NCBI RefSeq assembly: GCF_052425735.1
Contig: NC_135765.1
Location: 1,240,001-1,304,000 of the forward strand
DNA: 64,000 nucleotides
Reading direction: 5' to 3'
Source: Oculina patagonica
Lineage: Eukaryota
Positions 18,105 to 58,000 of the stretch are shown here, in pieces. The stretch's first letter is position 1, and each line of letters opens with the position of its first letter. Below the pieces are notes generated by a model. It was not told the origin of the DNA, searched no databases, and saw only the letters and a program-made list of their open reading frames with translations. The translations under genes and the position numbers were made by a program.

Positions 18105-18870
18105 CATGCACGTCCCGAGTCGACCAATGATCCATATATCTGAAATCTAACCTCTAAACTTTGCTTTGGACTTCCACAAGTTGCACACTCAACCTTATCA
18201 CTGTCGTTTCTCACCATGCAGCTATCGCACTCCCAGCGTCCATCTGGTGAAGAAACAGAGATTGAATTTGACGCTTGATTAAACGAACCAAAAGCGAAAA
18301 GCGGTTGCCCGTCATATTCAGTTGTTCCAGCCGATCCAAATGTAAACCCTGAAGCAGTAGATGGTGTAGCCGATCCAAATGTAAACCCTAAAGCAGTAGA
18401 TGGTGTAGCCGATCCAAATGTAAACCCTAAAGCAGTAGATGGTGTAGCCGATCCAAATGTAAACCCTAAAGCAGTAGATGGTGTAGCCGATCCAAATGTA
18501 AACCCTAAAGCAGTAGATGGTGTAGTCGAGTCAAATGTAAACCCTAGTAGATGGCGTAGTCGATGTAAGTGAAGTCCCTGAACCAGAAGATGGTGTAGTC
18601 GATACCAGTGAAATCTCTTAACGAGTGGATGGTGTATCCGATCTTGATGAAAACAACGGTTTCGCCTTTTTCTTTTGGTCTTGACTGTGTTCTGCTTCTG
18701 GCGTTCGACTTACACAAGCAACACACTCAATCGTAACACTCTCGTTTCTCTCCATGCAAATGTCACACTCCCACGACCCTTTAGCAGCTTTAGTGTAACG
18801 TCTACTCTTCTCTGGCTTACAGTCATTCCCTTTAAAATATGCCACTATATCTCTTGGCTTGTCATCTTTT
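18105..18870 (-). pseudogene. Decayed former C-terminus of gene A (zinc finger, FG repeats, zinc finger)
   Basis: Past the stop, shifted frames encode GSWECDICMERN..CVAC, 39-bp [13 protein letters not shown] repeats and WECDSCMVRNDSDKVECATC, matching the C-terminus of gene B. Frameshift near 18868, in-frame TAA at 18618, further frameshift near 18545. Confidence 0.8.
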
Positions 18871-21800
18871 TCTTCGACAACCATGACATCCAGGACAAAC
18901 TTCATGTTTTGCATAATTGAAGAAATTAGAGGGGAGCCAAAGGCGGGAGGCTTTCTCACGATCGGCCATTGAGGAACGAACTTCATAAACAAGGAGACAG
19001 TCTTCATCTTGCCTTTTAATACCTTTTAGATGACTGTTGGGTGTCAAGAAACGTCCGCCAGTGCAATGAGTAGGAAGGTTAGCAGCACCAGCATTTTCTT
19101 TAGTGGAATGGATTGGAACAGGATTCGTTGAGGTTGTCAGCAAATTCCCCTGACTTGGTGAAAGCGAAAGTTGAGTTTGAGATGACTGTAAGGGTTCTAT
19201 TGGAAGGGAAGACAAGAAATTCGTAACATCGTCAAATATCTCCTTAAACTTTCCAGCAATTTCTGCTGACTTAAACCTGATGGCTAGCTTCTCTGGTCTC
19301 GCCTCATCCTCAGCATAGTCTGCTGGAGTGTACCACACCCAAGATCTGTCTGATCCAACATTGGGTTTAAGCTCCATTCCAGCATTAATGTTGTGATTGG
19401 CACACAACTTTTTGATGTGCTCCCTTCGCATGAGAACTCTTCCTTGGCCGGTTTTTGGATGACGCAAAAGCCTTACATCTCCAACACCTCTTTCTTTCCA
19501 TTCAGCTGAATCGGCAACAAAACGGTACAGCTTTGCTCGCTCAGAAAACAGCACCTCCAGATCTTCCTCGCCTGTGACAACTTGGATTGCATCTGGAAGA
19601 GGAATGATTGGTTTAAAATAAGGCTGTGCGTGACTAGGACTCTCGGGAGACAGAGGTAACGTAGGTGACAATGGCGATTTAGGTTTGGGAGGTGGCGACT
19701 TTGGCGAAACCTGCAGACTGAATGTAAACTTGGCTGGAGTACTTGTGCCAAATGGAAGATCGGTCAAAACACTCTCTTGGGAGTGAGGTGTTGATGGCTT
19801 CTGTGGAGTCGTCCCCTGCCTACTTGGAGAGGACATCTTACTTGGAGACAAGTAAATTTCATCATCTTGTTTATCATCACATGATTCTCCTCGTCCAATG
19901 GTAAAATATTGGAAAACTGAAGTGGCTGGAGATGAGTCCTTGTTGAAATCCTGAAAAGCGTTTTGTTCTACTGACTCAACGACAGGAGCAGTCGTAGTTG
20001 TCGATGCAACCTTTGTTGTTGTAGACAAAAGTTCAACAGATCCAGAAGCAGACTTGATGGAGCTGCACGAAATGCATTTCGAGTCCCCTGCGTTGTTTTC
20101 AACACAACACACTTCACAAGTCCATGCAGCGGGAGCTGCAGCAAATGTCGACATAAATTGTTTATAAAGTGCTCCTTGTTGATCTTTAGCTGGTTCCATT
20201 TCAGAACGAATTTCGGAAGACAAGGTCTCCTGAAGGTCCTCAAATACTTCCTTGAACTTCCCAGCAATTTCTGCCGACTTTAACTTGATGGCGAGCTTCT
20301 CTGGTCTTGCCTCACCCTCAGCATAGTCAGCTGGAGTGTACCACACCCAAGATCTATCTGATCCAACATTGGGTTTAAGCTCCATTCCAACATTAATGTT
20401 GTGATTGGCACACAATTTTTTTATGTGCTCCCTTCTCATGAGAACTCTTCCTTGGCCTGATTTTGGATGACGCAAAAGCTTAACATCTCCAACACCTCTT
20501 TCCTTCCACTGACCCGAGTCTGCATCAAAACGGTACAGCTTAGCTCGCTCAGAAAACAACACCTCCAGTCCTTCTTCTCCTGTGACAACTTGGATTTCAT
20601 CTGGAAGAGGAATGATTGGCTCAAAATAAGGCTCTGCGTGACTAGGAATCTCAGGAGACAACGGTGACGTAGGTGGTGACGACGATTTAGGTTTGCGAGG
20701 TGGAGACTTTGGGGAAACCTGCAGACTGAATGTAAACTTGGCTGGAGTACTTGTGCCAAATGGACGATTGGTCAGAAGACACTCCTGGGAGTGAAGTGTT
20801 GATGGCTTCTGTGGAGTCGTCCCCTGCCTGCTTGGAGAAGAGGTCTTACTTGGAGACAAGTAAATTTCATCATCTTGTTTATCATCACATGATTCTCCTC
20901 GTCCAATGGTAAATAGTTGTGAGCTGCCAAATCTTTTTACTTTGGGTGATTGGAAAATTGAAGTGGCTGGAATTGAGTCCTTCTTGAAATTTTGAAAAGC
21001 GTTTGGTTCTACTGATTCAACGACAGAAGCATTTGTAGTTGTCGGTTTAACCTCTGCTGTTTTAGACAAAGGTTCAACAGATCCAGCAGCAGACTTGATG
21101 GAGCTACACGCAATGCATTTCGAGTCCGCTGCGTTGTTTTCAACATAACACACTTCACAAGTCCATGCATCGGGAGCTGCAGCAAATGTCGACAAAAACT
21201 GTTTATAAAGTGTACACCCAGCTTCTTGTTGATCTTTAGCTGGTTCCGTTTCAGGACGATTTTCTGAAGACAAGGTCTCCTGAAGGTCCTCAAATACGTC
21301 CTTGAACTTCCCAGCAATTTCTGCCGACTTTAACTTGATGGCGAGCTTCTCTGGTCTTGCCTCACCCTCAGCATAGTCAGCTGGAGTGTACCACACCCAA
21401 GATCTATCTGATCCAACATTGGGTTTAAGCTCCATTCCAGCATTAATGTTGTGATTGGCACACAACTTTTTGATGTGCTCCCTTCGCATGACAACTCTTC
21501 CTTGGCCTGATTTTGGATGACGCAAAAGCTTTATATCTCCAAGACCTCTTTCCTTCCACTGACCCGAGTCTGCATCAAAACGGAACAGCTTGGCTCGCTC
21601 AGAAAACAGCACCTCCAGACCTTCTTCACCTGTGATAACTTGGATTTTATCTGGAAGAGGAATAATTTGCTCAAAATGAAGCTTTTCATCACCTTGGCCT
21701 TCGACGTCTTCACCAAGTGCATCAAAAAGTTGCGTACGAGCTCCTTGAAATGGTTCATGGCTGTCCTTCTTCAGAGTCTGAGAAAATGCATTGCCTTCTT

Positions 21801-24800
21801 TTGGCTTTAGGGACGAAAATGTCAGCTGACCAAAAATAGATGATTCTCCAAACACGTGAGTGGCATGTCCACTTTTCTCTGGCTTTGGAGCATTCTCTTC
21901 AGAATGAGGCACTATAGTGTTTGTTTTGTCCTCCTTTTTAGTCAACGTTGTCGTCTCTTTGGTTATCCCACCACAACCAAGACATCCAGGGCAAACTTCT
22001 TGCTTTACATAATTGAAGAAGTTTGAGGGGAGCCAAAGGCGAGAAGCTTTCTCGCGATTTGCCATTGAGGCACGAACTTCATAAACAACGAGACAGTCTT
22101 CATCTTGCTTTTTAGTACTCTTTAGAGCACTCTGGAGCGTCATGAAACGTCTGCCTGTGAGATGAGTAGGGAGGTTAGCAGGTTCAGCATTCAGTGGGGT
22201 AGTCAGTAACTTCCCTTGACTTGGTGAAAACGGAGGCTGGGTTTGAGAGGACTTCATGGGTGGCATTGGCGAGGAAGACTCCAAGGAATCTTCATTTTCT
22301 TCTCCATCATCTTCGCCCTCAGCTGATGTATAACTCAGACTCTCGTCCGTGGAATCCTCTGATTCTTCAATGAATTCTTCATAATCGTCGCATTCTTCTA
22401 CAATGACGGTGGAAATAGGTTTGGTAACCTCTTGAAGAGACGTCTCTTCTCCGGGCTCGTTCACAACGTAGGGTGTAAAGTTAAAACCTCCAGCCTGGGA
22501 TTCCTGGTTGGCAAAATCTTGTTGTTGCTTAGCAGCAGCAAGGAGTCGAAGTAGTTCACTACTGGAAAAGTCGACTTCAGGTCTTGAATTTGAAGAAAAT
22601 GCCCCTTGAAGTGTGAATGGCTGTGAGAACATCTCAGATGTCTGCAGAGTATTCTGAGGCTGTGGTGTTTCAGAATCCAAGAAAGGTGGTGTTGTTTGGT
22701 ACCAGGGATCGCCACTTTTAGCCCAAGTTGTGGCCCCACCCAGAGGCGCACAGGCGTCTAGTTGACCAAACTGAAAGGTACCAGTTGGTTGCTCCGAATC
22801 GTGTCCTGATGCACTCACTCCATATATTTGTGGCGAGCTACTCACGCTTGTTTTTAGTGGCCCTGTTAAACTCAATCCTAATGTTTGTGAAAAGGTACTG
22901 GTGCTTGTATCCAGTGGTCCTATCGCACTCCCTCCAGATAAAAATGGCGAGCTACTCACGCTTGTTATCAGTGGCCCTGTTGCACTCAATCCTAATGTTC
23001 GTGAAGAGTTACTGGTGCTTGTATCCAGTGGTCCTATGGCACTCGCTCTAGACAAAAATGTCGAGCTACTCACGCTTGTTTTCAGTGGCCCTGTTGCACT
23101 CAATCCTAATGTTTGTGAAGAGGTACTGGTGCTTGTATCCAGCGGTCCTATGGCACTTCCTCCAAATGAAAATGGCGAGCTACTCACGCTTGTACTCAGC
23201 ACTCCTTTGGAACTCAATCCTAATGTTTGTGAGGAGGTACTGGTGCTTGTATCCAGTGGTCCTATCGCACTTCCTCCATTCCCAAATAAAAATGGCGAGC
23301 TACTCACGCTTGTTTTCAGTGGCCCTGTTAAACTCAATCCTAGTGTTTGTGAAGAGGTACTGGTGCTTGTGTCCAGCGGTCCTATGGCACTCCCTCCAAA
23401 TGAAAATGGCGAGCTACTCACGCTTGTACTCAGTGGCCCTATTGCACTGAATCCTAATGTTTGTGAAGAGGTACTGGTGCTTGTGTCCAGCGGTCCTATG
23501 GCACTCCCTCCAAATGAAAATGACGAGCTACTCACGCTTGTTTTCAGTGGCCCTGTTGCACTGAATCCTAATGCTTGTGAAGAGGTACTGGTGCTTGTGT
23601 CCAGCGATCCTATGGCACTCCCTCCAAATGAAAATGACGAGCTACTCACGCTTGTTTTCAGTGGCCCTGTTGCACTCAATCCTAATGTTTGTGAGGAGGT
23701 ACTGGTGCTTGTATCCAGTGGTCCTATCGCACTTCCTCCAAATAAAAACGGCGAGCTACTCACGCTTGTTTTCAGTGGCCCTGTTAAACTCAATCCTAGT
23801 GTTTGTGAAGAGGTACTGGTGCTTGTGTCCAGCGGTCCTATGGCACTCCCTCCAAATGAAAATGGCGAGCTACTCACGCTTGTACTCAGTGGCCCTATTG
23901 CACTGAATCTTAATGTTTGTGAAGAGGTACTGGTGCTTGTATCCAGCGATCCTATGGCACTCCCTCCAAATGAATATGGAGAGCTACTCACGCTTGTACT
24001 CAGCACTCCTTTGGAACTCAATCCTAATGTTTGTGAGGAGGTACTGGTGCTTGTATCCAGTGGTCCTATGGCACTTCCTCCAAATGAAAATGGCGAGCTA
24101 CTCACGCTTGTACTCAGCACTCCTTTGGAACTCAATGCTAATGTTTGTGAGGAGGTACTGGTGCTTGTATCCAGCGGTCCTATGGCACTTCCTCCAAATG
24201 AAAATGGCGAGCTACTCACGCTTGTACTCAGCACTCCTTTGGAACTCAATCCTAATGTTTGTGAGGAGGTACTGGTGCTTGTATCCAGTGGTCCTATGGC
24301 ACTTCCTCCAAATGAAAATGGCGAGCTACTCACGCTTGTACTCAGCGTCCCTTTGGAACTCAATGCTAATGTTTGTGAGGAGGTACTGGTGCTTGTATCC
24401 AGCGGTCCTATGGCACTTCCTCCAAATGAAAATGGCGAGCTACTCACGCTTGTACTCAGCACTCCTTTGGAACTCAATCCTAATGTTTGTGAGGAGGTAC
24501 TGGTGCTTGTATCCAGTGGTCCTATGGCACTCCCTCCAAATGAAAATGTCGAGCTACTCACGCTTGTACTCAGCGCTCCTTTGGAACTCAATGCTAATGT
24601 TTGTGAGGAGGTACTGGTGCTTGTTTCCAGCGATCCTATGGCACTCCCTCCAAATGAAAATGTCGAGCTACTCACGCTTGTACTCAGCGCTCCTTTGGAA
24701 CTCAATGCTAATGTTTGTGAGGAGGTACTGGTGCTTGTTTCCAGCGATCCTATGGCACTCCCTCCAAATGAAAATGTCGAGCTACTCACACTTGTACTCA

Positions 24801-27800
24801 GCGCTCCTTTGGAACTCAATGCTAATGTTTGTGAGGAGGTACTGGTGCTTGTTTCCAGCGATCCTATGGCACTCCCTCCAAATGAAAATGTCGAGCTACT
24901 CACGCTTGTACTCAGTGCTCCTTTGGAACTCAATCCTAATGTTTGTGAGGAGGTACTGGTGCTTGTTTCCAGCGGTCCTATGGCACTCCTTCCAAATGAA
25001 AATGTTGAGCTACTCACGCTTGTACTCAGTGCTCCTTTGGAACTCAATCCTAATGTTTGTGAGGAGGTACTGGTGCTTGTTTCCAGCGGTCCTATCGCAC
25101 TCCTTCCAAATGAAAATGTTGAGCTACTCACGCTTGTACTCAGCGCTCCTTTGGAACTCAATCCTAATGTTTGTGAAGAGGTACTGGTGCTTGTTTCCAA
25201 CGGTCCTATGGCACTCCTTCCAAATGAAAATGTTGAGCTACTCACGCTTGTACTCAGTGCTCCTTTGGAACTCAATGCTAATGTTTGTGAGGAGGTACTG
25301 GTGCTTGTTTCCAGCGATCCTATGGCACTTCCTCCAAATGAAAATGTCGAGCTACTCACGCTTGTACTCAGTGCTCCTTTGGAACTCAATCCTAATGTTT
25401 GTGAAGAGGTACTGGTGCTTGTGTCCAACGGTCCTATCGCACTCCTTCCAAATGAAAATGTTGAGCTACTCACGCTTGTACTCAGTGCTCCTTTGGAACT
25501 CAATCCTAATGTTTGTGAAGAGGTACTGGTGCTTGTGTCCAACGGTCCTATCGCACTCCTTCCAAATGAAAATGTCGAGCTGCTCACGCTTGTACTCAGT
25601 GCTCCTTTGGAACTCAATCCTAATGTTTGTGAAGAGGTACTGGTGCTTGTGTCCAACGGTCCTATCGCACTCCTTCCAAATGAAAATGTTGAGCTACTCA
25701 CGCTTGTACTCAGCACTCCTTTGGAACTCAATCCTAATGTTTGTGAAGAGGTACTGGTGCTTGTGTCCAACGGTCCTATCGCACTCCCTCCAGATAAAAA
25801 TGGCGAGCTACTCACCCTTCTATTTAGTGGTCCTGTTGAACTTACTCCAAATTTTTGTGGTGAGTTACTCACGCTTGTATACAGGGGTCCTGTTAAACTC
25901 ACTCCAAATTTTTGGGGCGAGCTACTCACGCTTGTATTCAGGGGTGCTGTTGTACTCACTCCAAATGATTGTGGGGAGGTACTCAAGCTTGTATTCAGTG
26001 GTCCTGTTGTACTCACTCCAAATGATTGTGGGGAGGTACTCAAGCTTGTATTCAGTGGTCCTATTGCACTCACTCCAAATGATTGTGGGGAGGTACTCAA
26101 GCTTGTATTCAGTGCGCGTGTTGCACTCACTCCAAATGATTGTGGAGAGGTACTCAAGCTTGTATTCAGTGGTCCTGCTGTACTCACTCCAAATGATTGT
26201 GGGGAGGTACTCAAGCTTGTATTCAGTGGTCCTGTTGTACTCACTCCAAATGATTGTGGGAAGGTACTCAAGCTTGTATTCAGTGGTCCTGTTGTACTCA
26301 CTCCAAATGATTGTGGGGAGGTACTCAAGCTTGTATTCAGTGGTCCTGTTGTACTCACTCCAAATGATTGTGGGGAGGTACTCAAGCTTGTATTCAGTGG
26401 TCCTGTTGTACTCACTCCAAATGATTGTGGGGAGGTACTCAAGCTTGTATTCAGTGGTCCTGTTGTACTCACTCCAAATGATTGTGGGAAGGTACTCAAG
26501 CTTGTATTCAGTGGTCCTGCTGTACTCACTCCAAATGATTGTGGGGAGGTACTCAAGCTTGTATTCAGTGGTCCTGTTGTACTCACTCCAAATGATTGTG
26601 GGGAGGTACTCAAGCTTGTATTCAGTGGTCCTGTTGCACTCACTCCAAATGATTGTGGGGAGGTACTCAAGCTTGTATTCAGTGGTCCTGTTGCACTCAC
26701 TCCAAATGATTGTGCGGAGGTACTCAAGCTTGTATTCAGTGGTCCTGTTGCACTCACTCCAAATGATTGTGGGAAGGTACTCAAGCTTGTATTCAGTGGT
26801 CCTGTTGTACTCACTCCAAATGATTGTGGGGAGGTACTCAAGCTTGTATTCAGTGGTCCTGTTGCACTCACTCCAAATGATTGTGGGGAGGTACTCAAGC
26901 TTGTATTCAGTGGTCCTGTTGTACTCACTCCAAATGATTGTGGGGAGGTACTCAAGCTTGTATTCAGTGGTCCTGTTGTACTCACTCCAAATGATTGTGG
27001 GGAGGTACTCAAGCTTGTATTCCGTGGTCCTGTTGTACTCACTCCAAATGATTGTGGGGAGGTACTCAAGCTTGTATTCAGTGGTCCTGTTGTACTCACT
27101 CCAAATGATTGTGGGAAGGTACTCAAGCTTGTATTCCGTGGTCCTGTTGTACTCACTCCAAATGATTGTGGGGAGGTACTCAAGCTTGTATTCAGTGGTC
27201 CTGTTGCACTCACTCCAAATGATTGTGGGAAGGTACTCAAGCTTGTATTCAGTGGTCCTGTTGTACTCACTCCAAATGATTGTGGGGAGGTACTCAAGCT
27301 TGTATTCAGTGGTCCTGCTGTACTCACTCCAAATGATTGTGGGGAGGTACTCAAGCTTGTATTCAGTGGTCCTGTTGTACTCACTCCAAATGATTGTGGG
27401 GAGGTACTCAAGCTTGTATTCCGTGGTCCTGTTGTACTCACTCCAAATGATTGTGGGGAGGTACTCAAGCTTGTATTCAGTGGTCCTGTTGCACTCACTC
27501 CAAATGATTGTGGGGAGGTACTCAAGCTTGTATTCAGTGGTCCTGTTGTACTCACTCCAAATGATTGTGGGAAGGTACTCAAGCTTGTATTCAGTGGTCC
27601 TGCTGTACTCAGTCCAAATGATTGTGGGAAGGTACTCAAGCTTGTATTCAGTGGTCCTGCTGTACTCACTCCAAATGATTGTGGGAAGGTACTCAAGCTT
27701 GTATTCAGTGGTCCTGCTGTACTCAGTCCAAATGATTGTGGGGAGGTACTCAAGCTTGTATTCCGTGGTCCTGTTGTACTCACTCCAAATGATTGTGGGA

Positions 27801-30067
27801 AGGTACTCAAGCTTGTATTCAGTGGTCCTGCTGCACTCAGTCCAAATGATTGTGGGGAGGTACTCAAGCTTGTATTCAGTGGTCCTGTTGCACTCACTCC
27901 AAATGATTGTGGGGAGGTACTCAAGCTTGTATTCAGTGGTCCTGCTGCACTCAGTCCAAATGATTGTGGGGAGGTACTCAAGCTTGTATTCAGTGGTCCT
28001 GCTGCACTCAGTCCAAATGATTGTGGGGAGGTACTCAAGCTTGTATTCAGTGGTCCTGCTGCACTCAGTCCAAATGATTGTGGGAAGGTACTCAAGCTTG
28101 TATTCAGTGGTCCTGTTGCACTCACTCCAAATGATTGTGGGGAGGTACTCAAGCTTGTATTCAGTGGTCCTGTTGTACTCACTCCAAATGATTGTGGGAA
28201 GGTACTCAAGCTTGTATTCAGTGGTCCTGCTGTACTCAGTCCAAATGATTGTGGGAAGGTACTCAAGCTTGTATTCAGTGGTCCTGCTGTACTCAGTCCA
28301 AATGATTGTGGGAAGGTACTCAAGCTTGTATTCAGTGGTCCTGCTGTACTCAGTCCAAATGATTGTGGGGAGGTACTCAAGCTTGTATTCCGTGGTCCTG
28401 TTGTACTCACTCCAAATGATTGTGGGAAGGTACTCAAGCTTGTATTCAGTGGTCCTGCTGCACTCAGTCCAAATGATTGTGGGAAGGTACTCAAGCTTGT
28501 ATTCAGTGCGCGTGTTGCACTCACTCCAAATATTTTTGTCGAGCTGCTTACGCTTGTATTCAGCGATCCTTTGGAACTCACCCCAGATGTTTGTGGGGAG
28601 CTGTTCCCTCTTCTATTCAGGGGTCCTTTGGAACTAAATCCAACTGTTTGTGAGGAGCTAATTTCGGTGAGTAGCTTACTTTCCGTCCCTGTTAGCATAT
28701 TAAACACAACCTTAAGTTGAGCGTAGAATCCTTCTTTCACCTCATTAAGCATTTCCTACAATTGAAGAAGAATCAACACAAATTGTGAAATACTTGGTGG
28801 GACACATGGATCATAAGGTCGAAAGACGAGAAACTCAAATTGTAACGCATATGGCTTCTTTATTTTTCAAGACAATACATATGCGGGGTTATTGACCAGG
28901 AGCGGGACCAAGAGCTGGATATTGGCCAAGTTCTTTTTTTGCGGGTTCATTTTTGCGAGGTCCACACTCTAAGCTTAGTTAGAAGTACATAAAGGATTAT
29001 GGACTTCTGGCTTAGTCAGGAAAGGACTTATTATGTGGCATAAAGAATACCACTTTTTTTGTGTGCGGGACACAGCGGGCAAGATAGCCCCATCTTGCAC
29101 GCTTGGGTAGCCAGTTACAGTTTTATAGCAGTTGTAGAAATAAGTCAGGAAAAAAAAAAGAAACATTTAAAGAGAGTGAAAACGAAAGGAGTCATGAAAA
29201 CAAGTTCACTAAAACTGTCGACACGGCTAGGAACTGAATTTGCTAAAATTTACGTTTTTTCGTGTAGCCATCTCAGCCTTTAGTGTAGACATCATTGTTT
29301 CCAGTGTTTCTATGCTGTATTTGTTCTTGCTCCTCTCTTCAACGAAAAGACTCTGGAAAAAAAGCAATAATTGTTCAAGTATACGCTAATTTCTAATGGC
29401 TTTCGAAAATAGTTATTTCTAACAATCATGGTTCATTTGTACAATATGGATCGAGTAGAGCAAAAGAATATGTTTAATCGAAAGAAAACTCGTCCTTTTT
29501 TACCAATAAGATGCAAAACTTTTCTCGGTCTGGTGCTTGTTGTCAGAGCTTTTTTTTTAGGGATTGTTCTGATTAGTTCGCGTAACAATTTTAAACGCTC
29601 TACGGGGGTTGGAAAGCAAGGAAAAGGGTAGGGAGAAAGAATGAGGGCATGGAAAGGTCAGGATCCGAGTCAGGAGGGACCTGTCAGATGTTCCTTCAAG
29701 ATGAACTGGCAAGCATTGGCACTGCAGCTGATGGTACTCCACAAGTAAAGCACAATATCGAGATACGTGTTTTACTGTCGACATCTTACTGTTTGGTCGG
29801 ATAATGCAAACAAAGCTTTTCATAAGGAATTCCATTCTACGCCAGTCAAGTATTCCTCGGTTTCAGAAAACTAATACCCAACTAGGTTTTTGACTTTACA
29901 GTAACATTTAGTGCTCACAGAGACATCAATGGAAACAATAAGCCGAAAGTGTTTGAAAGAGATACCAGTACCTCGTACTCCTCCGCTTGTTGAGTCATAG
30001 ACTTTAATTTCTCTGCCAAATCCTTCTCAGCTATCTCTTTAACAATCACCTATACCAACCCATGTGG

Positions 30068-30105
<38 letters not shown>

Positions 30106-30633
30106 TAATAATAATAATAATAATAATAATTTTTATTTATTCATTTATAATAATAACAACAACTTTATTTCACATAATATTTTAAAAAAGGTAACATGTG
30201 GATAAAAAGGTTCTAAAAATTAACTATAATACCAATACTAATACTAATAATTATAAAAGTAAATTATAATTATCTTCAATTTTTCCCAGAATCCTTTGAG
30301 GCATTTTTAAAAAAGCTTAATAACTTTGGCAGACTACCACAAGATAACATTTGCCATGAAATATCTTCCCATGTCACAACTAGGGTAATGAGGTTATCGA
30401 TCACGTGACAATTTCTAAATAAGCGTTTATGCTTGCTTTGCATATTTGAGGTTCTGTTTGTGCGGGACATTTAAACATTACCAGGTGCCATCTTCAACTA
30501 AAAGTTTAAGGGGGCAATGCACATGAGAGACAAAGTCGGAAGACTAGGCCGAGGGCTATAGAAACTTGACGTTTTATCACACGGCAACGAAGCTTTGCAG
30601 GGTATACTTTTACCGGTTTCACTTGTAATAATG

Positions 30634-30843: not shown

Positions 30844-31269
30844 CAAACTATAGTTTTGGATCATATCTAAGTTACCTGTGTTTTGGCTTCCAAAAGCTTT
30901 CTCTTTGTTTTCGCCAAAGTCGACTCCATGCTTATCGCTCTTTCTTCTAGTTGCTGTCGTTGATAATCAATAAGATCTGCAGCAAAAACGGTATATTTTG
31001 AAACCTGATTATCATTATTGGTTTGCAACATTTTCGAGATTTTGTAACTTGATTCCAAGTTTATAGACTTTATATAGGCTCGACGTTCTATCTCGTTCAT
31101 TTACAACTGGATGTTTGTACCTTCACCATCATGTATCTGCTCGGTTATGTGTATTACCTATCTGAGACTGGCTGCCTTCCAATTTCTTCTCCAACCGGAC
31201 AATCTTTTCCTGAAGAGCCCTTTCTCTGGCGGAAAGGGAGTCCTCGAAGCTGTCATGCTCTCCATCCAT
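18862..31269 (-). CDS. RanBP2/Nup358-derived protein A (about 3427 aa): coiled coil, Ser/Thr-rich SFG repeats, IR domain, 3 Ran-binding domains, 2 RanBP2 zinc fingers, second IR domain
   Basis: Exons 31269-31158, 30976-30876, 30049-29972, 29352-29254, 28755-18862 join in frame. RanBD motif WKERGxGDxKLLRHP...KLCANH occurs three times; WTCEVC..N..C..C twice; DCLVVYEVRASMANREKASRLWLPSNFFNY resembles the RanBP2 IR1/IR2 SUMO E3 repeat. Confidence 0.85.
22830..25830 (-). repeat. Coding tandem repeat, 114-bp (38-aa) unit, about 26 copies
   Basis: Unit approximately GPLDTSTSTSSQTLGLSSKGVLSTSVSSSPFSFGGSAI; two diverged 57-bp halves. Confidence 0.95.
25920..28560 (-). repeat. Coding tandem repeat, 57-bp (19-aa) unit, about 46 copies
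   Basis: Unit approximately GPLNTSLSTSPQSFGVSTT, near-identical copies. Confidence 0.95.
30627..30843. repeat. (TAA)n at 30627-30683 and (AAAG)n at 30756-30843; another (TAA)n at 30068-30130
   Basis: Directly visible in introns of gene A. Confidence 0.95.
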
Positions 31270-46400: not shown

Positions 46401-49400
46401 GTGAAGTCGATCCAAATGTAAACCCTGAACCAGTAGATGGTGTATCCGATCCAAATGTAAACCCTGAACCTGTAGATGGTGTAGCCAATCCGAATGAAAA
46501 CAACGGTTTCGTAACTTTCGTTTGGCCTTGACGTTGGTCTTGACGTGGTTCTGCGCCTGATTTTGGACTTCTACAAGCAACACACTCAACTTTATCACTG
46601 TCGTTTCTCACCATACAGATGTCGCACTCCCAAGATCCTTCAGCAGCTTTAAACTTAGTGAGAAGATCTTCTTTGACTTCTTCCTGCCTTTTGTCTTCCT
46701 GAATTGCATTCAACGGTGTCTGGTTTTTCAACATTTCTGGGCACGAACTGGGTGTCTTCAACATTTTTTGGCATTCTTCAAACGTCTCTTTGAATAGCTT
46801 AGCGATGTCTTCTGATTTAAACCTCACCGCAAGTACTTCTGCATTGCACTCCTGCTCAGAAAAGTCTGCCAGAGTGCTCCACACCCAGGATTTCTCTGAC
46901 CCTGCATTGGGCTGTAGTTTCATGTCAGTTGTTATCTGATGATTTGCACAAATTTTCAACACCTGATCGCGACGCATCAGAACTCTCATCTTTCCTGATT
47001 GTCTATTTCTCAACAACTTTATATCCCCGACTCCTCGTTCTTTCCATTGCTTGTCCCCTGATACAAATCGATACAATTTGGTTCTGTAGGAACTGAACTC
47101 TGGTACAAATCGATACAACTTGGCTCTGTGGGAAAACATGACTTCTTCGTCTTCTTCGCCAGTTTTTACATCAATCTTGTCAGGAAGTGGAATAATTGGC
47201 TCAAAGTGAGGGCCATCATGGTCATCTTCTTCTCCTTTATCTTCTTCTTCTTCTTCTTCTTCTTCATCATCATCATCATCATCTTCTTCATCTTCATCTT
47301 CTTCTTCGCCTGGTTTTAGAGTTCCACAAGCAACACACTCAACTTTATCACTGTCGTTTCTCACCATACAGATGTCGCACTCCCAAGATCCTTCAGCAGC
47401 TTTAAACTTAGTGAGAAAATCTTCTTTGACTTCTTCCTGCCTTTTGTCTTCCTGAATTGCATTCAACGGTGTCTGGTTTTTCAACATTTCTTGGCACGAA
47501 CTGGGTGTCTTCAACATTTCTTGGCATTCTTCAAACGTCTCTTTGAATTGCTTAGCGATGTCTTCTGATTTAAACCTCACCGCAAGTTGTTCTGCATTGC
47601 ACTCCTGCTCAGAAAAGTCTGCCAGAGTGCTCCACACCCAGGATTTCTCTGACCCTGCATTGGGCTGTAGTTTCATGTCAGTTGTTATCTGGTGATTTGC
47701 ACAAATTTTCAACACCTGATCGCGACGCATCAGAACTCTCATCTTTCCTGATTGTCTATTTCTCAACAACTTTATATCCCCGACTCCTCGTTCTTTCCAT
47801 TGCTTATCCTCTGATACAAATCGATACAATTTGGCTCTGTGGGAAAACATGACTTCTTCGTCTTCTTCCCCAGTTTTCACATCAATCTTGTCAGGAAGTG
47901 GAATAATTGGCTCAAAGTGAGGACCGTCATGATCATGGTTACCCTCTGTTGTGACATGGTCATCGTCAGCATTCCGAGCTGCAAACAGCGGAGAACCTGC
48001 ACCAGAACCAAACAGAAAGTTTGACTTGCTTAGGGTTGATATCTCTTCAGGATCATCACTTCTTGTTGGCTGGTCTTGTTTGCTGTGATTTTAAAATAAA
48101 AGTGTGGTGTAAATGACATTGCAAAAGGCCCTCTTAAAGGCCCTCTAGACACTAGAACACTGCGAGTGTTGCGTGACTTGAACACTGCGAGTTTTGCGTT
48201 ACATTATAATTCATTGTGTCGTACATGTAGTATGTTCAACTTTCTTGTATGAGCCTGCGATCCTTGTGGTTGCCTCGTGGTTTCAGTTGGCCGCCATGTT
48301 TGTATAGACAGAGATTTGGTGATTAAAACCTAGTATTTCTGCTGGCAATCGTCTTCTCTCATTTACAACAAAAAGAATTTAAATTAATTTCCTAATGGCT
48401 GTTATAAAACTTAAACCAAAACAGCCATATTGAAAACAAAACAAAAACTTAGGTGAAAGATATGGAAAATGCAAATGAGCCAATAAATGATTGGTTTTGG
48501 CTTTTAAATAAGTGGCTGAAAGAGTCTTTACTCCAATTGTAATTGATGTGTCACAAAATCTTAGTCACGGGAACAAAATTGACGAGAGAAAATAACCTGA
48601 CCTTAAATTTACCAAAACTTACGCATGCCGTATTTCACTTAAAAATGCACTTTATTTGTCAGAAATTGTGAAATGTCATGAACAGTCTTCACCGTAATTT
48701 ATATGTTAGTATTATTCACACTGACAGACCATTACCTACCTTGCAACTGTCTCTGATTGACTGGAGCAGGTTTCAGGCGACAAGTGTTCATAGCCAAATA
48801 AGTTATTTGGCAATTCCAGGCATTTGGCTGTCTTCCTTTGATCATCTGTAACCTCTGCTGTTTTAGACAATTGTTCAACAGATCCAACAGCAGACTTGAT
48901 GGAGCTGCATGCAATGCATTTCGAGTTCCCTGCGTTGTTTTCGACGTAACACACTTCACAAGTCCATGCATCTGGAGCTGCAACAAATGTCGACAAAAAT
49001 TCTTTATAAAGTGTACACCCAGCTCCTTGTTGATCTTCAGCTGGTTCCGTTTCAACGACAGAAGCAGTCGTAGTTATCGGTTTGACCTCTGCTGTTTTAG
49101 ACAAAGGTTCAACAGATCCAGCAGCGGACTTGATGGAGCTGCACACAATGCATTTCGAGTTCCCTGCGTTGTTTTCGACGTAACACACTTCACAAGTCCA
49201 TGCATCTGGAGCTGCAACAAATGTCGACAAAAATTCTTTATAAAGTGTACACCCAGCTCCTTGTTGATCTTCAGCTGGTTCCGTTTCAACGACAGAAGCA
49301 GTCGTAGTTATCGGTTTGACCTCTGCTGTTTTAGACAATTGTTCAACAGATCCAACAGCAGACTTGATGGAGCTGCATGCAATGCATTTCGAGTTCCCTG

Positions 49401-52400
49401 CGTTGTTTTCGACGTAACACACTTCACAAGTCCATGCATCTGGAGCTGCAACAAATGTCGACAAAAATTCTTTATAAAGTGTACACCCAGCTCCTTGTTG
49501 ATCTTCAGCTGGTTCCGTTTCAACGACAGAAGCAGTCGTAGTTATCGGTTTGACCTCTGCTGTTTTAGACAAAGGTTCAACAGATCCAGCAGCGGACTTG
49601 ATGGAGCTGCACACAATGCATTTCGAGTTCCCTGCGTTGTTTTCGACGTAACACACTTCACAAGTCCATGCATCTGGAGCTGCAACAAATGTCGACAAAA
49701 ATTCTTTATAAAGTGTACACCCAGCTCCTTGTTGATCTTCAGCTGGTTCCGTTTCAACGACAGAAGCAGTCGTAGTTATCGGTTTGACCTCTGCTGTTTT
49801 AGACAAAGGTTCAACAGATCCAGCAGCGGACTTGATGGAGCTGCACACAATGCATTTCGAGTTCCCTGCGTTGTTTTCGACGTAACACACTTCACAAGTC
49901 CATGCATCTGGAGCTGCAACAAATGTCGACAAAAATTCTTTATAAAGTGTACACCCAGCTCCTTGTTGATCTTCAGCTGGTTCCGTTTCAACGACAGAAG
50001 CAGTCGTAGTTATCGGTTTGACCTCTGCTGTTTTAGACAATTGTTCAACAGATCCAACAGCAGACTTGATGGAGCTGCATGCAATGCATTTCGAGTTCCC
50101 TGCGTTGTTTTCGACGTAACACACTTCACAAGTCCATGCATCTGGAGCTGCAACAAATGTCGACAAAAATTCTTTATAAAGTGTACACCCAGCTCCTTGT
50201 TGATCTTCAGCTGGTTCCGTTTCAACGACAGAAGCAGTCGTAGTTATCGGTTTGACCTCTGCTGTTTTAGACAATTGTTCAACAGATCCAACAGCAGACT
50301 TGATGGAGCTGCATGCAATGCATTTCGAGTTCCCTGCGTTGTTTTCGACGTAACACACTTCACAAGTCCATGCATCTGGAGCTGCAACAAATGTCGACAA
50401 AAATTCTTTATAAAGTGTACACCCAGCTCCTTGTTGATCTTCAGCTGGTTCCGTTTCAACGACAGAAGCAGTCGTAGTTATCGGTTTGACCTCTGCTGTT
50501 TTAGACAAAGGTTCAACAGATCCAGCAGCGGACTTGATGGAGCTGCACACAATGCATTTCGAGTTCCCTGCGTTGTTTTCGACGTAACACACTTCACAAG
50601 TCCATGCATCTGGAGCTGCAACAAATGTCGACAAAAATTCTTTATAAAGTGTACACCCAGCTCCTTGTTGATCTTCAGCTGGTTCCGTTTCAACGACAGA
50701 AGCAGTCGTAGTTATCGGTTTGACCTCTGCTGTTTTAGACAAAGGTTCAACAGATCCAGCAGCGGACTTGATGGAGCTGCACACAATGCATTTCGAGTTC
50801 CCTACGTTGTTTTCGACGTAACACACTTCACAAGTCCATGCATCTGGAGCTGCAGCAAATGTCGAGCTATTCACTGTTCCTTCGTCACTCTTTCCAAGTG
50901 TAAATGGTACGCTATTCACTGGTCCTGCATCACTCTTTCCAAGTGTAAATTTGGGCTTGCTTTGATCTGGAATCGGGCACAATGTAGGATGGCCAGTGAC
51001 AGTGGGACAGCCATAATTATTCTGAAGGAGGAGAGATAGAAAAAAGTGCGATCTGATAAATTCGAGTATTGAAGTATTGAAGGGCGAATATGACACTGGC
51101 AACAACGAAATACTGTGTCAAGCAAGTTTTGAAACCTTGGAGGTTGCTCCCAAAGCAACACTGATTTGAGTATATATTAAGTAGGACGTTTTCGTAATGT
51201 ACGTTCGTTGCAAACGAAAAGCAAAAATAGCACGTTACTTATGCCTGGATTTGCAATTTCTTTTGACCTTTCTGTAAAAGATACAGATACTTCTTGATCA
51301 TAAGGAAGTTAAAGGAGAAAACGTTTTCCTTACTGATGATCACTGAAGTTATAAGTTATTCGTTAATTTTCCAAGTCTAAACTGTATTGTATTGTATTGA
51401 AATTGCCTTACGTTGCGTTGCTTTTGCATTGTGTTGTATTACCTAATCTGAAGCCCAATTGTTGTATCGCAGTGAAATGAACACCACATACCTTTAGTAC
51501 TTCTCTTGACAGCTTCTTTTCTGTCGTCTCTCCAGTTTGAGAGTTTGGGTGATTAAGTTTAGCCTGAGGCTTCGACAGGGACTTAGACTGGTTAATTTCG
51601 TGGGACGACCTGTGAAGCTTATTTTCTGCCCCTGTTAGTTTATCGAACACAACCTTAAGTTGAGCGTAAAATCCCTCTTTAACCGCACTTAGCATCTCCT
51701 ACGAAGAAAGAGCAAGACCAAAAATAAGTAATAGTAGGTTATATGGGGATGAGGATTATCTGATAAGGTTTAAAGGACGGAAAATTGAAATTCACCTGGC
51801 TACCTCGTTTCATCTCACAATAGAACCCAAACATGACGCCTCAGTGCTAGTTTAAATCTGCGTCTGCGTTCGGGCCTAGAGGCCCATCAGGCCGTAGTTG
51901 AACCGGTTTCCAAAGAATTAAGTGACAAAATGTATTTCTACTCCCCCTGGCCAGATGGGATTTATCCCAGCATTAAATTAAACAACTGGGATGATAGAGG
52001 CACTGTGAGAGTAAAGTGTCTTGCCAAAGAACACAACGCAGGCTAGTGACCCAGGTGAGGGCTTGAATCCGGAATGCTCGATCCGGAGTCCAGTTCGCTA
52101 ACTGCGCCTCCCATGCATGACTCCTCAACGCCATCACAGATAATAACAAACAGACCCCATTAACTATGTATGTTTAAGCGATATAGGTCCATGCAAATCC
52201 TTAAATTGTCGTAAAGTTTACGGAGAGTGGAAATGGAAACAAATTTGCTGAAACTGTAGACGTTTTTAGCAACGTGTTAAAACTTACGTTAAGGAAGCCG
52301 TCAAACTCCTTTCGCGTAGCCATCTCAGCCTTCGCTGTGGAAAGTATAGTTTCCAGTGCCTCTATGCTGTGTTTGTTCTTGTTCCTCTCTGCGATGAAAA

Positions 52401-53686
52401 GAATCTGCGGGAACAAATATGTACAGGTATGTTCAGCTTTTCGAAATCAGTGATGTATAATAGTGGTCGTGGTCCAGATGAAGAATGACAGCTTTCCCAC
52501 AATGCAAAACCGCGTTCATTCCCAGCACGGGATCGCAAGATGGCGGGTTTTCTTCGTGAATTTGTAGATGCTCTCTACGGATAATGATATGGATTAATAA
52601 CCCCCTAATTATCATGCTTTTCCCGTTTTTTGGCCAGTGAGATGCAAAACTACCCTTGGTGTCGGAGATAGGTTGTCGGGATATAGGGAGGGAGGTGCCA
52701 GGTACTCCCCTGTATGGGTCAGCCGGTCTGTGGTACTGCAGCCGTCGGTATTTGCATCATGTAAAGCACAATGCTGAGAGTGCTTTTCGGTAGATATCTA
52801 AGGATAACTCTTCTGTTGGGTAAAAAATACCAGAGCTGTATATAAGGAATTTTTCAGCTTCCTGAAAATGCAGCAATTTCGTTTCGCGTTGACGGTAACT
52901 AGTTCAATCAGAAAACCACAGACATATTGTGAAAACGATAAAGAAAAAGGGTTACGAAGAAAAAAACTCTGAAGTAAACAGCGATTATTTATAGGTAACT
53001 TATCAACAATGTTACGGTTTGACATGAACCTTTACCTTGTACTCCTCCGCTTGTTGAGTCATAGACTTTAATTTCTCTGCCAAATCCTTCTCAGCTATCT
53101 CTTTTTCCATCACCTATACCAACCCATGTGAGAACAAAAGAATCAGATGAATTTATGATCAGAAATTGATAAAGAAAGGGAAGAAAACAAGACTTAAGGG
53201 AACTTGAAGTAGCCAGGTTACCTGATAACTTACCTCTTTTTTGGCTTCCAAAAGTTCTTTCTTTGTTTTTGCCAAAGTCGACTCCATGTTAATCGCTCTT
53301 TCCTCCAGTTGCTCTCTTTGATTATCAATAATATCTAAGTGTTGCACAAACGAGAGAGATCTGTTCTAAACTTACAACAGACATCATAGGTTTGGTTTCA
53401 TTTGACGAGTTTTCCTTACCAGTAAATGAGCTACAACGTATTAACTGTACATGTATCCCAACATTTTCCCAACGTCAGTATAGTGTCTGGATTTGTAATT
53501 TGTACATTAATCTTCACATACGCGTTTGACTACACGGGATAGTTGTTTGGACACCTAATAAGTTTATGTGTTACCTATCTGAGACTGGTAGCCTTCCAAT
53601 TTCTTCTCCAGTCTGACAATCTTTCCTTGAAGCGCCCGTTCTCTCGCAGAAAGGGACTGCTCCAAGACGTGAGGATCTCCATCCAT
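43444..53686 (-). CDS. RanBP2/Nup358-derived protein B (about 2511 aa): coiled coil, 9 tandem zinc fingers, 2x(RanBD + zinc finger), FG/GLFG array, terminal zinc finger
   Basis: Exons 53686-53575, 53334-53234, 53113-53036, 52404-52288, 51698-51492, 51021-48740, 48082-43444 join in frame (7536 nt). RanBD motif WKERGVGDIKLLRN..KICANH twice; WECDICMVRNDSDKVECVAC fingers. Small extra exons between 51492 and 51021 cannot be excluded. Confidence 0.85.
43900..46490 (-). repeat. FG-repeat array: 39-bp units (about 45165-46490) followed by about 35 36-bp GLFG/GVFG units (about 43900-45165)
   Basis: GSATPSTGSGFTF and GSAAPSTGPEFTL 13-mers, then SGLFGSAAPSTT 12-mers. Confidence 0.95.
48850..50870 (-). 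repeat. 234-bp (78-aa) tandem repeat, each unit carrying one RanBP2-type zinc finger, 9 fingers
   Basis: DAWTCEVCYVENNAGNSKCIxC recurs at exact 234-bp spacing. Confidence 0.95.
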
Positions 53687-55044: not shown

Positions 55045-58000
55045 ATGGTTTGGACAAAGGACGAGGTCGATAAATACGTGGTCCAAGTGGAACGGAACTG
55101 CGCCAACGCGCACGAGGTGTGCTCATTCATTTCGTGCATTTTGCCTCTCAGCTAAACCTTGAAAGATTAACAATTTCCTTTACGTATCTTACAGCGAAAT
55201 CTGAAGGGATTTGCCTTTGCAAGACTTTACAAGGAAGCATCGGACAATGAGAGCGCTAAACGGTTAGTTATCATGGTTATCTTTGTTCCCTTGACACTTC
55301 CTGTTTTGTGACTCGACAAATTTTGACAGAAGCAAAGCTTAATTATAAACGAAAAACGCTCACGATTAATTTAACACAATTATTGTTGATTGAATTTTGA
55401 TGTCCGGCACCGTTGAAAAATCTTTTTGTGCTATGTTGAATCTCGTTTTCTCTTTGAGATGCTTGTTGCTAGCGTTTCACTGGGGCAGATAAGGTATGCG
55501 TACATGTAAAAAGTGCATGCTAAGCATGTTTTTCTATGATCTGCAACTAAGATAATTCTTCTAAGATATCATTAACTTTGCCCAACAGATACCTGGAAGC
55601 TTACATCAGTGAAAGTGAAGGTGATTTCAGGTAAGTGAGTAAGGTCTACAAAAAAATCGGTTGCCATTTAGTATTATTTGTATTTGTGTTTGTTGTTAAG
55701 TAAATCAACCTGCACATAGACCCTAGCCTTCCAGTCTGAATCTCAGGATATCAACTCTCCTTAACTTACTGATTGTTCTACATTTGTTTTAAACTTAGTA
55801 CTGGGAATGTAGCGTACATAAAAAAATATCTCCTTGTCAATGATTTTCTTCATTTTCATTATATTTAACAATACCGTAGAATTGCGGTTATAAGCCCTGG
55901 GCTTATACAACTTCGTAAGGGGTTTTGGGTGGGCTTTTAAACGGAGGGGCTTATATCTGGGAGGGCTTATAAGCAGAATGAAAAAAACGTTTCGAAAAGA
56001 GCCACGGGAGTGTTGATGGAAATATGTTTTTAAGTTAAAAACGCATAATAAAGCAACATTTAGCCCTATTCAGTACTGCCATCCAGTAGAGGGGGCTTAT
56101 ATCCGGAGGGGCTTATAATCGGATGTATTTTTTTGTTTCTAAGCAGATGGGCCTATAACCGGAGGGGCTTATAAGTGGGGGGGCTTATAACCGGAATTTT
56201 ACGGTATAATAATAATAATAATAATAACAGTTCTTAGCACGCACTTTACATACGTCTCAGTGCGTTTACATTTGAAATTTAAAAGTAAAAAAAAAAACCC
56301 GATTTAAATTACAATCAGATAAAAATACGCTAAGGATAACCTAATTTAATTACAATTGATAAAAAATAAAAATAAAAATGACAATAAAAACATGGCGAAC
56401 TTGTTAAAAATATATCGACCTAAATAAATATGTCTTTAAAATTAAAATAAAATTTAACAAACTTCATGAATTTGTGGCTACATAAGTCATCATGTTTATG
56501 CAAAATTGAATTGATCAACATTATTTACTTATATTTCCAGGGGTCATTGTCTTATGGGGCAGTTATATGAAGGAATGGGACAGTTGGAAAAGGCTGTGGC
56601 CTCATATAGAAGGTTCTAGTATTTTTTTTATATACCGTATTTTTTAAACAATAATTCCACTCGCGCTTGTTGGATATGAGATCGTTATAGCCAACATGGC
56701 GCTATGCGCCTTGTTGACCATCTATCATCTCATATCCAAGCACGCTAGTGGAATAATTGTTAAGTATTTTATTCAAAGTACAAGATGCTACAAGCTTATG
56801 ACAAGTCTAGGATAGAAAATGTTGCACATAAATCAAATCTACAGTACCCGCTCCGAGATAAGAGCACCATCAAACTCATTGACAAAAAGCAGTCAATGCT
56901 TTGTTGCATTATAGCCAATGCATTTAGAAACAAGTTTTTCATCAACACATTTCACCTGTTATTAATTTTCAATAACAATTATTATAAAATTGTAACTTGC
57001 TACAGTCGGGAAAGACAAGAAAACTGTCACATTTGAAACGTGTAGGATAACCACAGCCACAATGTTATATGCAACAAAGTTATAACTGTTTACACTAATC
57101 CTAAGAGCCAGTCATCAACGCAACAACCTGCGCTCAGTCTAGATAGTTGCGATCAGAAGTGTACATTGCATTTGGTGACTGTGTATTCACAAGGAGTGCA
57201 CAGCTCAGGATCTGGCTGTTCTTTTAACGTACCAGTATGCAAGAAGGTACACTGTATCTTGAAGATTGTCTATATACACATATTTGTGAGAAACATCTAT
57301 CACATAAATTTATTTGTAACAAACTTTTTTGTAACTAGCTTTATGTTTGACCTATAACAATAACATTTATTGTTATAATAATTTACCAGTACTTAATGTT
57401 TTATTTTATGTATTATTATTGTTTTAGGTCCTTGGAATTAAACAACACTCAAAAGGAATTGGTTTTAAAAGGTTAGCTTACCAGCATATAGCCAGACAAA
57501 AATTCTTTCCAAGGCAATATCAGAAAAACCTCACTTTTATATTTAAAGTATTTTATCAGTGTATAGCCTCCTACAAAAACCAGAATAAATATATAAATTC
57601 AATTTTTTTTACCGAGGCAAGTGCCTGGGGTCACCTGTTACTACCTACGGCCGTGATTACCTACAATTATAATCATGGATGTCTTCTTTGTTACCATCAC
57701 ACAGTATTCTTGAAGATTTTCTTACAAATTTTGGCTTTTGAGAGCCCCCTCCTCCTTGGAATTTCTAATGACCTTCCATGGGGTGGGTATGGATATTTTC
57801 TGGAACTGCACAATTAAAAGCAAATTATGGGGCTTAACTGGAATTTCTAGAGGGGTGGGGGGATTCAAACCAAAAACCTTCCATGTGAGGGCTATGGATA
57901 TTTTCTGGAACAACACATTACACTTTGGTTGTTTTTGTCTTCAAAAATTATGCAGTTCAGCAGAGAAAGAGATCAAATCCCATAAAAGCACTTATTTCTA

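Follow-up and report, generated by a model that had tools for sequence, protein, structure and literature searches.

Which genes are the two RanBP2-like genes that lie beside RANBP2 in the stony coral Oculina patagonica (suborder Vacatina, 'robust' clade), and where does the coiled-coil head that they share come from? The stretch that raises this question, referred to here as the window, comprises 64,000 nucleotides of contig NC_135765.1 (assembly GCF_052425735.1, positions 1,240,001 to 1,304,000). From the locus coordinates, it corresponds to about 1,240,001-1,304,000 of chromosome CM126642.1 in assembly GCA_052425735.1, and it encodes the O. patagonica GenBank protein KAL9963475.1 at 100% identity. 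The two genes, termed gene A and gene B, both lie on the minus strand and join a head of probable GCC2 origin to RanBP2 modules. We consider it probable that they are intact, lineage-restricted chimeric paralogues of RanBP2/Nup358, whose GCC2 coiled-coil head would make them dimeric, pore-independent scaffolds for Ran, transport receptors and SUMO.

Two minus-strand genes share a coiled-coil head

An earlier note, made from the sequence alone, had described two minus-strand genes sharing four small exons (112, 101, 78 and 99/117 nt) and the start of a fifth. These sizes proved exact. All borders of the head exons are canonical in both genes (AG before and GT after the exon), and the frame is maintained into exon 5, which starts at 28755 in gene A and at 51698 in gene B. 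When the 5' regions of the two genes were compared by BLASTN, only five exon blocks aligned (83-93% identity) and no alignment was found between introns. The splice paths are matched by independent database models from Oculina (KAL9963475.1) and Stylophora (PFX33905.1 and XP_022790823.1); KAL9963475.1 has the same junctions as gene B exons 1-7 and loses the frame further on, within the FG array.

After splicing, the heads have 157-164 aa, in agreement with the roughly 150 heptad-rich residues claimed before. A single heptad register runs unbroken over ~110 residues, and its a/d hydrophobic score was reached by 0 of 1000 shuffled sequences. AlphaFold2 predicted a single helix at residues 5-106 of the head, with a block-mean pLDDT of 92-98 over residues 11-80. 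A Pfam scan of the head alone gave at best a sub-threshold match to PUMA_CC (16.8 bits, cutoff 30).

The head matches GCC2 exon for exon

To the earlier note the head was of unrecognized origin, and here the analysis goes beyond it. A phmmer search with the spliced head of gene B against 1.84 billion representative proteins returned 29 matches, all of which were coral open reading frames (ORFs) except for one pea protein. The coral matches were of two kinds. The first kind, 62-89% identical to head exon 1, 2 or 4, included a 103-aa Desmophyllum pertusum protein, OS493_010232. The second kind was a nearly invariant GCC2-type exon, DMVDSQRQQAEERALKMKSVLVKTKKELAEAKKQV, and two matches of this kind (P0125 and P0131) map to loci L005 and L006. 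Head exons 2-5 have collinear homologues (E=2e-10, 7e-5, 8e-3 and 6e-4) at these loci, which also carry an exon-1-like exon, have no RanBP2 homology, and both end in Rab_bind and GRIP exons. Two L005 exons joined at a verified phase-2 junction scored 43.2 bits for Rab_bind in Pfam (cutoff 27) and 26.8 bits for GRIP, within a range of 26.8-32.5 bits for GRIP at L005 and L006 (cutoff 24.4). The joined exons also matched the human GCC2 chain 3BBP_D (PDB 3BBP) at E=1.3e-7; searched singly against the PDB, the GRIP half-exon gave no match and the Rab_bind half-exon a weak one (E=0.03). Since the Rab_bind family is, as we take it, specific to GCC2, the Rab_bind, GRIP and 3BBP matches together mark L005 and L006 as GCC2 loci.

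The head and GCC2 also agree in exon structure. In both, the exon 1 donor is in phase 1, exon 2 has 101 nt and exon 3 has 78 nt; exon 4 and its GCC2 counterpart are each in phase 0 at both ends, and exon 5 starts at a homologous codon. The two genes are likewise similar at the 3' end of the intron preceding exon 2, and in the reverse search the head exons were the only matches of the GCC2 exons in the window. This shared exon structure, together with the reverse search, argues that part of the GCC2 rod was copied at the level of DNA. The head would thus be a copy of five GCC2 exons, joining RanBP2 sequence ~30 codons into the fifth. About three further exons, which GCC2 has between the homologues of exons 4 and 5, are absent from the head; no relic of them or of the Rab_bind/GRIP exons was found in the window or at the chimera loci L001, L002 and L004 described below. 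At the more distant GCC2 locus L006, head exons 2 and 3 have a single, undivided exon as their counterpart (10034-10234), reflecting either an intron gain in the lineage of L005 and the chimera or a loss in L006.

The top match of the phmmer search, the pea protein KAI5381517.1 (P0121, Pisum sativum, 4344 aa, E=9e-52), was rejected as a repeat/coiled-coil artefact. It is built of ~240-aa repeats, and a 47-aa stretch matching the region of the head exon 1-2 junction occurs in it 15 times at 36% identity. We take this similarity as chance in a repeat, though a resemblance across an exon junction is odd.

Spurious matches of this sort do occur, and no annotated full-length GCC2 was returned, as would be expected if the head resembled GCC2 only as any coiled coil might and came from another gene or arose de novo. 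We regard such generic similarity as very improbable, because among 1.84e9 proteins the only non-chimera matches other than the pea artefact were GCC2-type exons, and because five collinear exon matches with identical 101-nt and 78-nt exons, identical phases and a similar intron end before exon 2 would have to be coincidental.

The heads are spliced onto different sets of RanBP2 modules

Gene A is modelled as a 3427-aa protein, whose exon 5 is a single 9.9-kb open frame down to 18862. The gene B model has seven exons, encodes 2511 aa and ends at 43444. Its exon 5 is connected by a phase-0 donor (51492/51491) and a strong acceptor to the exon start at 51021, and its exon 6 by a phase-2 donor after 48740 and a matching acceptor to the start at 48082. 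Table 1 lists the exons and modules.

In a Pfam scan for Ran_BP1, zf-RanBP, IR1-M and Nucleoporin_FG we recovered the RanBD, zinc-finger, IR and FG modules onto which the head had been said to be spliced. Gene A has three Ran_BP1 domains (1.8e-135), two zf-RanBP and an IR1-M match of 28.7 bits (cutoff 25) with two copies of the IR motif (LVVYEV..LWLPSNFF); its ORF holds 77 FG motifs, and its repeat region is 44% Ser+Thr. Gene B has two Ran_BP1, Nucleoporin_FG (3.6e-31) and twelve zf-RanBP domains, 54 FG motifs in exon 7, and one diverged IR2-like motif. As reference for canonical coral RanBP2 we used P0002, 'E3 SUMO-protein ligase RanBP2-like isoform X2 [Oculina patagonica]'. Residues 1627-2847 of the gene A ORF are collinear with P0002 residues 1214-2365 (66% identity), gene B exon 7 is 75-85% identical to residues 2469-3268, and the gene B zinc-finger unit matches residues 2016-2095 at 85%. 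This unit of 234 nt (78 aa, one zinc finger and a linker) occurs in 8.6 copies of 98% identity at 48851-50865, which looks like either a very recent amplification or an uncertain copy number in the assembly.

The N-terminal part of RanBP2 is not found in either gene. Residues 1-900 of P0002 match the window only on the plus strand, at canonical RANBP2 and at a relic of it, and in neither gene did Pfam detect a TPR or a cyclophilin domain. The earlier claim that the TPR N-terminus is lacking is therefore borne out. The lack of a cyclophilin domain stands as an observation, but the domain is also absent from the Pfam lists of the canonical coral RanBP2 proteins P0002 and P0004-P0007; its absence from genes A and B is thus not a derived feature, and would be ancestral for coral RanBP2.

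Downstream of the gene A stop codon, a tail of ~750 nt has 82-88% identity to 43389-43798 and 46170-46651 of gene B. It is divided between two frames, neither of which is that of gene A, and contains a zinc finger that scores 29.6 bits in Pfam; it is more likely a decayed remnant than an alternative 3' exon.

Table 1. Coordinates of features in the window; assignments to GCC2 and RanBP2 are by homology
Feature	Position	Strand	Description
Gene A exon 1	31158..31269	-	112 nt; has ATG; putatively GCC2-derived; donor CAGATAG/GTAATA, phase 1; homologous GCC2 exon at L005 9185-9355
Gene A exon 2	30876..30976	-	101 nt; putatively GCC2-derived; 64% identity to L005 GCC2 exon (E=3e-11), which also has 101 nt and the same phases
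Gene A exon 3	29972..30049	-	78 nt; putatively GCC2-derived; GCC2 exon also 78 nt
Gene A exon 4	29254..29352	-	99 nt; putatively GCC2-derived
Gene A exon 5	18862..28755	-	~30 putatively GCC2-derived codons, then RanBP2-derived sequence; stop codon 18862-18864
Gene A FG array (exon 5)	22803-28657	-	57-nt (19-aa) unit x102.6 (TRF)
Gene A first IR motif	22015-22092	-	precedes first RanBD
Gene A first RanBD	21256-21675	-	Ran_BP1
Gene A first zinc finger	21106-21165	-	zf-RanBP
Gene A second RanBD	20206-20625	-	Ran_BP1
Gene A second zinc finger	20065-20124	-	zf-RanBP
Gene A third RanBD	19198-19617	-	Ran_BP1
Gene A second IR motif	18919-18996	-	last module before stop codon
Gene A tail, probably decayed	18107..18860	-	3' of stop codon; zinc finger, FG x6, zinc finger; homologous to gene B C-terminus
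Gene B exon 1	53575..53686	-	112 nt; has ATG; putatively GCC2-derived; 100% identical to KAL9963475.1 aa 1-37
Gene B exon 2	53234..53334	-	101 nt; putatively GCC2-derived; E=2e-11 against L005 GCC2
Gene B exon 3	53036..53113	-	78 nt; putatively GCC2-derived
Gene B exon 4	52288..52404	-	117 nt; putatively GCC2-derived
Gene B exon 5	51492..51698	-	207 nt; first ~30 codons putatively GCC2-derived (E=3e-4 against L005 exon), then linker; donor CTAAAG/GTATGT, phase 0
Gene B exon 6	48740..51021	-	nine RanBP2-type zinc fingers, then IR2-like motif at ~48784-48849
Gene B exon 7	43444..48082	-	RanBDs, zinc fingers, acidic tract, FG array, stop codon
Gene B first RanBD (exon 7)	47497-47916	-	followed by zinc finger 47326-47385, then acidic tract
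Gene B second RanBD (exon 7)	46744-47205	-	followed by zinc finger 46573-46632
Gene B FG array	43607-46491	-	followed by zinc finger 43471-43530, then stop codon
RANBP2 5' part	55045..63684	+	canonical; TPR exons, aa 1-378; runs on past window end
Relic of gene B/RANBP2 intergenic region and RANBP2 5' end	33992..35072	+	88-89% identity to 54864-55750 and 56507-56636; RANBP2 exon 1 at 34173-34244, exon 3 at 34975-35058
LINE	35486-36745; 38237-38794	+	RVT_1; zf-RVT (Pfam)
MCM7	989-10856	+	Pfam MCM, MCM_lid, HTH_MCM7
Repeat of MCM7 3' part (8411-11479)	12221-17690		82-91% identity; straight after 500-N gap (11672-12171)
GIY-YIG (Penelope-like) ORF	60030-60842	-	within RANBP2 intron
160-nt element	14483-14644; 63120-63280		present in both orientations

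The chimera is retained in several families of robust corals

Head exons upstream of RanBD ORFs were also found at two loci of another coral assembly (L001 and L002, ENA ERZ25067556), in D. pertusum (L004) and in Stylophora pistillata (P0262/P0263), where the chimera corresponds to PFX33905.1 and RefSeq XP_022790823.1. The named hosts all belong to Vacatina, and the head is kept in at least three families of robust corals. We found no description of RanBP2 chimeras in cnidarians in the literature, consistent with the earlier impression of a family not yet described; the architecture is, on the other hand, not unique to this genome, and stands in the databases under uninformative or misleading names such as 'hypothetical protein', 'E3 SUMO-protein ligase RanBP2', 'Nup153' and, for XP_022790823.1, which has no GRIP domain, 'ranBP2-like and GRIP domain-containing protein 4'. 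Outside this group no head-bearing protein was found from Acropora or Montipora, which is weak negative evidence, and there was no head within 10 kb of RANBP2 in the sea anemone Actinia tenebrosa (L008). One further candidate, L003 (P0010), was ruled out as a chimera: it has same-strand TPR exons upstream and no head, and represents the canonical RanBP2 of another species.

At L002 the chimera is followed by an MCM gene, as at gene A. Over 7 kb, the upstream sequence and introns of L001 and L002 agree at 98.5-99% identity, but their large coding exons differ in structure and are only 80-92% identical; the two loci could be diverged haplotypes or paralogues whose 5' region has been homogenized. 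In D. pertusum, the chimera lies head-to-head with canonical RanBP2 and is annotated as three separate genes. One of these, OS493_010232 (L004 7600-8800), comprises the head and a frame-shifted tail, and an exon 4 acceptor AG two bases downstream restores the conserved frame. Exon 2 of the Desmophyllum head is shorter by 24 nt, apparently with a GC donor.

To assess constraint on the head, we compared nonsynonymous with synonymous substitution rates (dN/dS). The ratio was 0.28 between genes A and B (dS 0.42), 0.31 between gene B and L002 (dS 0.82) and 0.23 between gene B and Desmophyllum (dS 0.74). These values bear on the possibility that the genes are decaying by-products of segmental duplication near RANBP2, either pseudogenes or neutrally transcribed, whose frames are kept open by repeats and gene conversion. 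Relic pieces are indeed plentiful (the gene A tail, the RANBP2 relic and a LINE insertion), repeat arrays hold long ORFs open even on the opposite strand, the RanBDs are homogenized with the canonical gene, and segments of the Desmophyllum copy lie in different frames. However, decay is hard to reconcile with dN/dS values of 0.23-0.31 in three independent comparisons at a dS of 0.4-0.8, with exons but not introns being conserved between genes A and B, with splice sites that are all intact and non-repeat parts of ~1200 aa that are open, or with retention of the head in three coral families. We therefore consider it unlikely.

RanBDs evolve in concert with the neighbouring canonical gene

In a tree of 51 RanBDs, domains grouped first by position (R1, R2, R3 and R4/5), and the chimera domains of genes A and B fell with the canonical R2 and R4/5 types. 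Within each type, chimera domains cluster by species with their canonical counterparts, to which they are 97-99% identical (window 19198-21675 and 46744-47916; L004; L001). For example, the second RanBD of gene A and Oculina canonical R2 share 99% identity, and in Desmophyllum the RanBDs of the chimera are almost identical to R1 and R2 of the canonical gene. The heads have a single origin and have diverged between species, whereas the RanBDs resemble those of the same species, and this combination indicates concerted evolution of the RanBDs, probably by gene conversion with the adjacent canonical gene.

We infer a single origin of the chimera, in robust stony corals (Vacatina), beside an inverted RANBP2 copy. 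In Actinia tenebrosa, RANBP2 lies convergent with MCM7, with a PABIR-like gene on its upstream side; as gene A is also convergent with MCM7, the ancestral place of RANBP2 appears to be taken by the chimera, and the canonical Oculina gene would be the inverted copy. The chimeras of other species start with a RanBD1-type domain and carry the full series of RanBD types, for which reason the Oculina copies look like complementary remnants of a fuller ancestor. Three RanBD2-type domains, two IR motifs and an FG array of ~100 units remain in gene A. Gene B still has two RanBD4/5-type domains and nine zinc fingers, together with one IR2-like motif and, towards the C-terminus, an FG array. Most simply, the chimera was duplicated in Oculina (head dS 0.42) and the copies kept complementary parts. 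Within 40 kb, the locus would combine DNA-level exon shuffling, concerted evolution between chimera and parent gene, and duplication with complementary loss.

Neighbouring genes and assembly

Exons of canonical RANBP2 in the window are 97-100% identical to P0002, and the RANBP2 start codon lies 1358 nt from that of gene B. The head-to-head arrangement that the earlier note had given for both genes is thus correct for gene B; gene A faces a truncated RANBP2 5' relic, not the live gene, and this relic is cut off by the LINE insertion located between it and gene B. On its other side, gene A adjoins MCM7 in convergent orientation. The 3' part of MCM7 is repeated beyond a sequence gap, either as a real partial tandem duplication or as an assembly artefact. 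In the GenBank annotation of the region (L007), a 3499-aa TPR-bearing RanBP2 model spans the whole 27-kb locus on the strand opposite to gene B, and the FG part of gene B is entered as a separate 1096-aa gene. Possibly, the 3499-aa model takes the relic RANBP2 exon 1 (34173) as its first exon and passes over gene B by splicing.

The N gap and the duplicated MCM7 part just upstream, as well as long tandem arrays that are hard to assemble, raise the question of whether genes A and B themselves are an artefact, for instance haplotigs or collapsed repeats placed in tandem. This seems to us highly improbable, given that the heads differ at a dS of 0.42 and the introns do not align, that the downstream architectures of the two genes differ, and that another species also has two distinct copies (L001 and L002).

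A pore-independent scaffold as the probable function

In human Nup358, the N-terminal region anchors the protein at the pore and is followed by an oligomerization element. In genes A and B, a ~160-aa copy of the GCC2 rod would supply the start codon and a heptad coiled coil in place of the whole TPR/alpha-solenoid domain, and other corals have fuller copies, in which the RanBP2 sequence would begin just upstream of RanBD1. As the copied segment has an unbroken heptad register and GCC185 is a dimer, dimerization is the simplest role for the head: the GCC2-derived helix may form a parallel dimer as in GCC185, and A-B heterodimers would be possible. Such a dimer would present RanBDs that bind RanGTP, zinc fingers that bind RanGDP, FG repeats that bind transport receptors and IR motifs that bind SUMO-RanGAP1 and Ubc9. 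With the Rab_bind/GRIP exons and the RanBP2 N-terminal domain both absent, neither Golgi placement nor a pore anchor would be expected, which favours cytoplasmic, pore-independent platforms that could act like RanBP1 in transport-complex disassembly and also in SUMOylation. The coral genes would in that case represent a natural separation of function, with the Ran, transport-receptor and SUMO modules freed from the pore anchor and, in Oculina, split over two copies.

The head could alternatively retarget the protein and not merely dimerize it, by pairing with endogenous GCC2 or by keeping a GCC2 partner site, and so bring the modules to the trans-Golgi or another GCC2-associated structure. The best-conserved head exon is 64% identical to coral GCC2, the continuous heptad register would permit in-register pairing, and a functional affinity is hinted at by the separate fusion of the same two parent genes in primates (RGPD; PMC10690583). 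Set against this, the head has neither the three internal GCC2 exons nor the Rab_bind/GRIP exons that localize GCC185 (PMC3171126), and chimera-type head exons are more variable among the matches than the nearly invariant GCC2-type exon. Retargeting is in our view the main rival, though an unlikely one.

Several points weigh against our preferred reading of genes A and B as intact, dimeric scaffolds. Dimerization, pore independence and all binding activities are deduced from homology alone. The GCC2 identity of the head depends on loci L005 and L006, Pfam and the 3BBP match; the ENA comparison loci L001, L002, L005 and L006 carry no species label, and neither protein search had an annotated full-length GCC2 among its matches. 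In the second of these, a search with the head region of KAL9963475.1 (P0156) among candidates of 785-2499 aa, only P0156 and the Stylophora chimera were returned, possibly due to the length window, the word index or the HMMER bias filter. Gene conversion could preserve RanBDs without selection on the chimera, and the database models of the chimeras are possibly ab initio predictions. The decayed tail of gene A and the frame inconsistencies of the Desmophyllum copy suggest that some copies may be decaying, and the repeat arrays of genes A and B may be mis-assembled in copy number.

Comparison with known systems

The primate RGPD genes (1-8) keep the RanBP2 N-terminus and gain the C-terminal GRIP end of GCC2. 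They have hitherto been treated as a primate peculiarity, and corals and primates are more than half a billion years apart. These RANBP2-GCC2 chimeras originated by segmental duplication beside RANBP2 and were then amplified into several copies (PMC10690583). The coral chimeras have the same parents, a duplication beside RANBP2 and several copies in common with them, but the order is reversed: an internal part of the GCC2 rod forms the N-terminus, and the middle and C-terminal modules of RanBP2 follow. They lack the TPR/leucine-rich N-terminus of RGPD (none by Pfam) and its C-terminal GRIP domain (no match in the window). The scleractinian host and a sea anemone RANBP2 locus without the head also set their origin apart from that of RGPD. 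The earlier note had called the architecture roughly a mirror image of RGPD, which is right as regards a RanBP2 chimera with reversed parts; the likeness appears to go further, as the head itself would be GCC2-derived and the fusion independent. The coral genes would thus be a second, independent family of RanBP2-GCC2 fusions, and allow one to ask whether such fusions recur by chance and neighbourhood or because the two proteins work together. One speculative answer, which we think improbable as it stands, is that the recurrence reflects a functional link between the Ran/nucleoporin system and GCC2, with the head pairing with GCC2 or a partner to set up a Ran-GTP, transport-receptor and SUMO platform at the Golgi or annulate lamellae, off the pore.

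RanBP1 resembles the coral proteins in their proposed action only, as a RanBD-bearing RanGAP co-activator that is not anchored at the pore. The resemblance does not extend to family membership: RanBP1 is small, has a single RanBD and is without coiled coil, FG repeats, zinc fingers or IR motifs. GCC185, the GCC2 product, is a coiled-coil dimer placed on the Golgi by its Rab_bind/GRIP parts (PMC3171126). A part of its C-terminal rod is the exon-for-exon homologue of the coral head, whereas its Rab_bind and GRIP domains, N-terminal rod and three internal exons are all missing from the chimeras. Canonical RanBP2/Nup358 shares with the coral chimeras the R2 and R4/5 types of RanBD, RanBP2-type zinc fingers, FG repeats and IR motifs, but it has an N-terminal TPR/alpha-solenoid of ~900 aa where they have the GCC2 coiled coil, and each Oculina copy holds only a subset of its modules. 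By domain content, then, the coral chimeras would be neither canonical RanBP2, whose N-terminal domain they lack, nor golgins, whose GRIP domain they lack.

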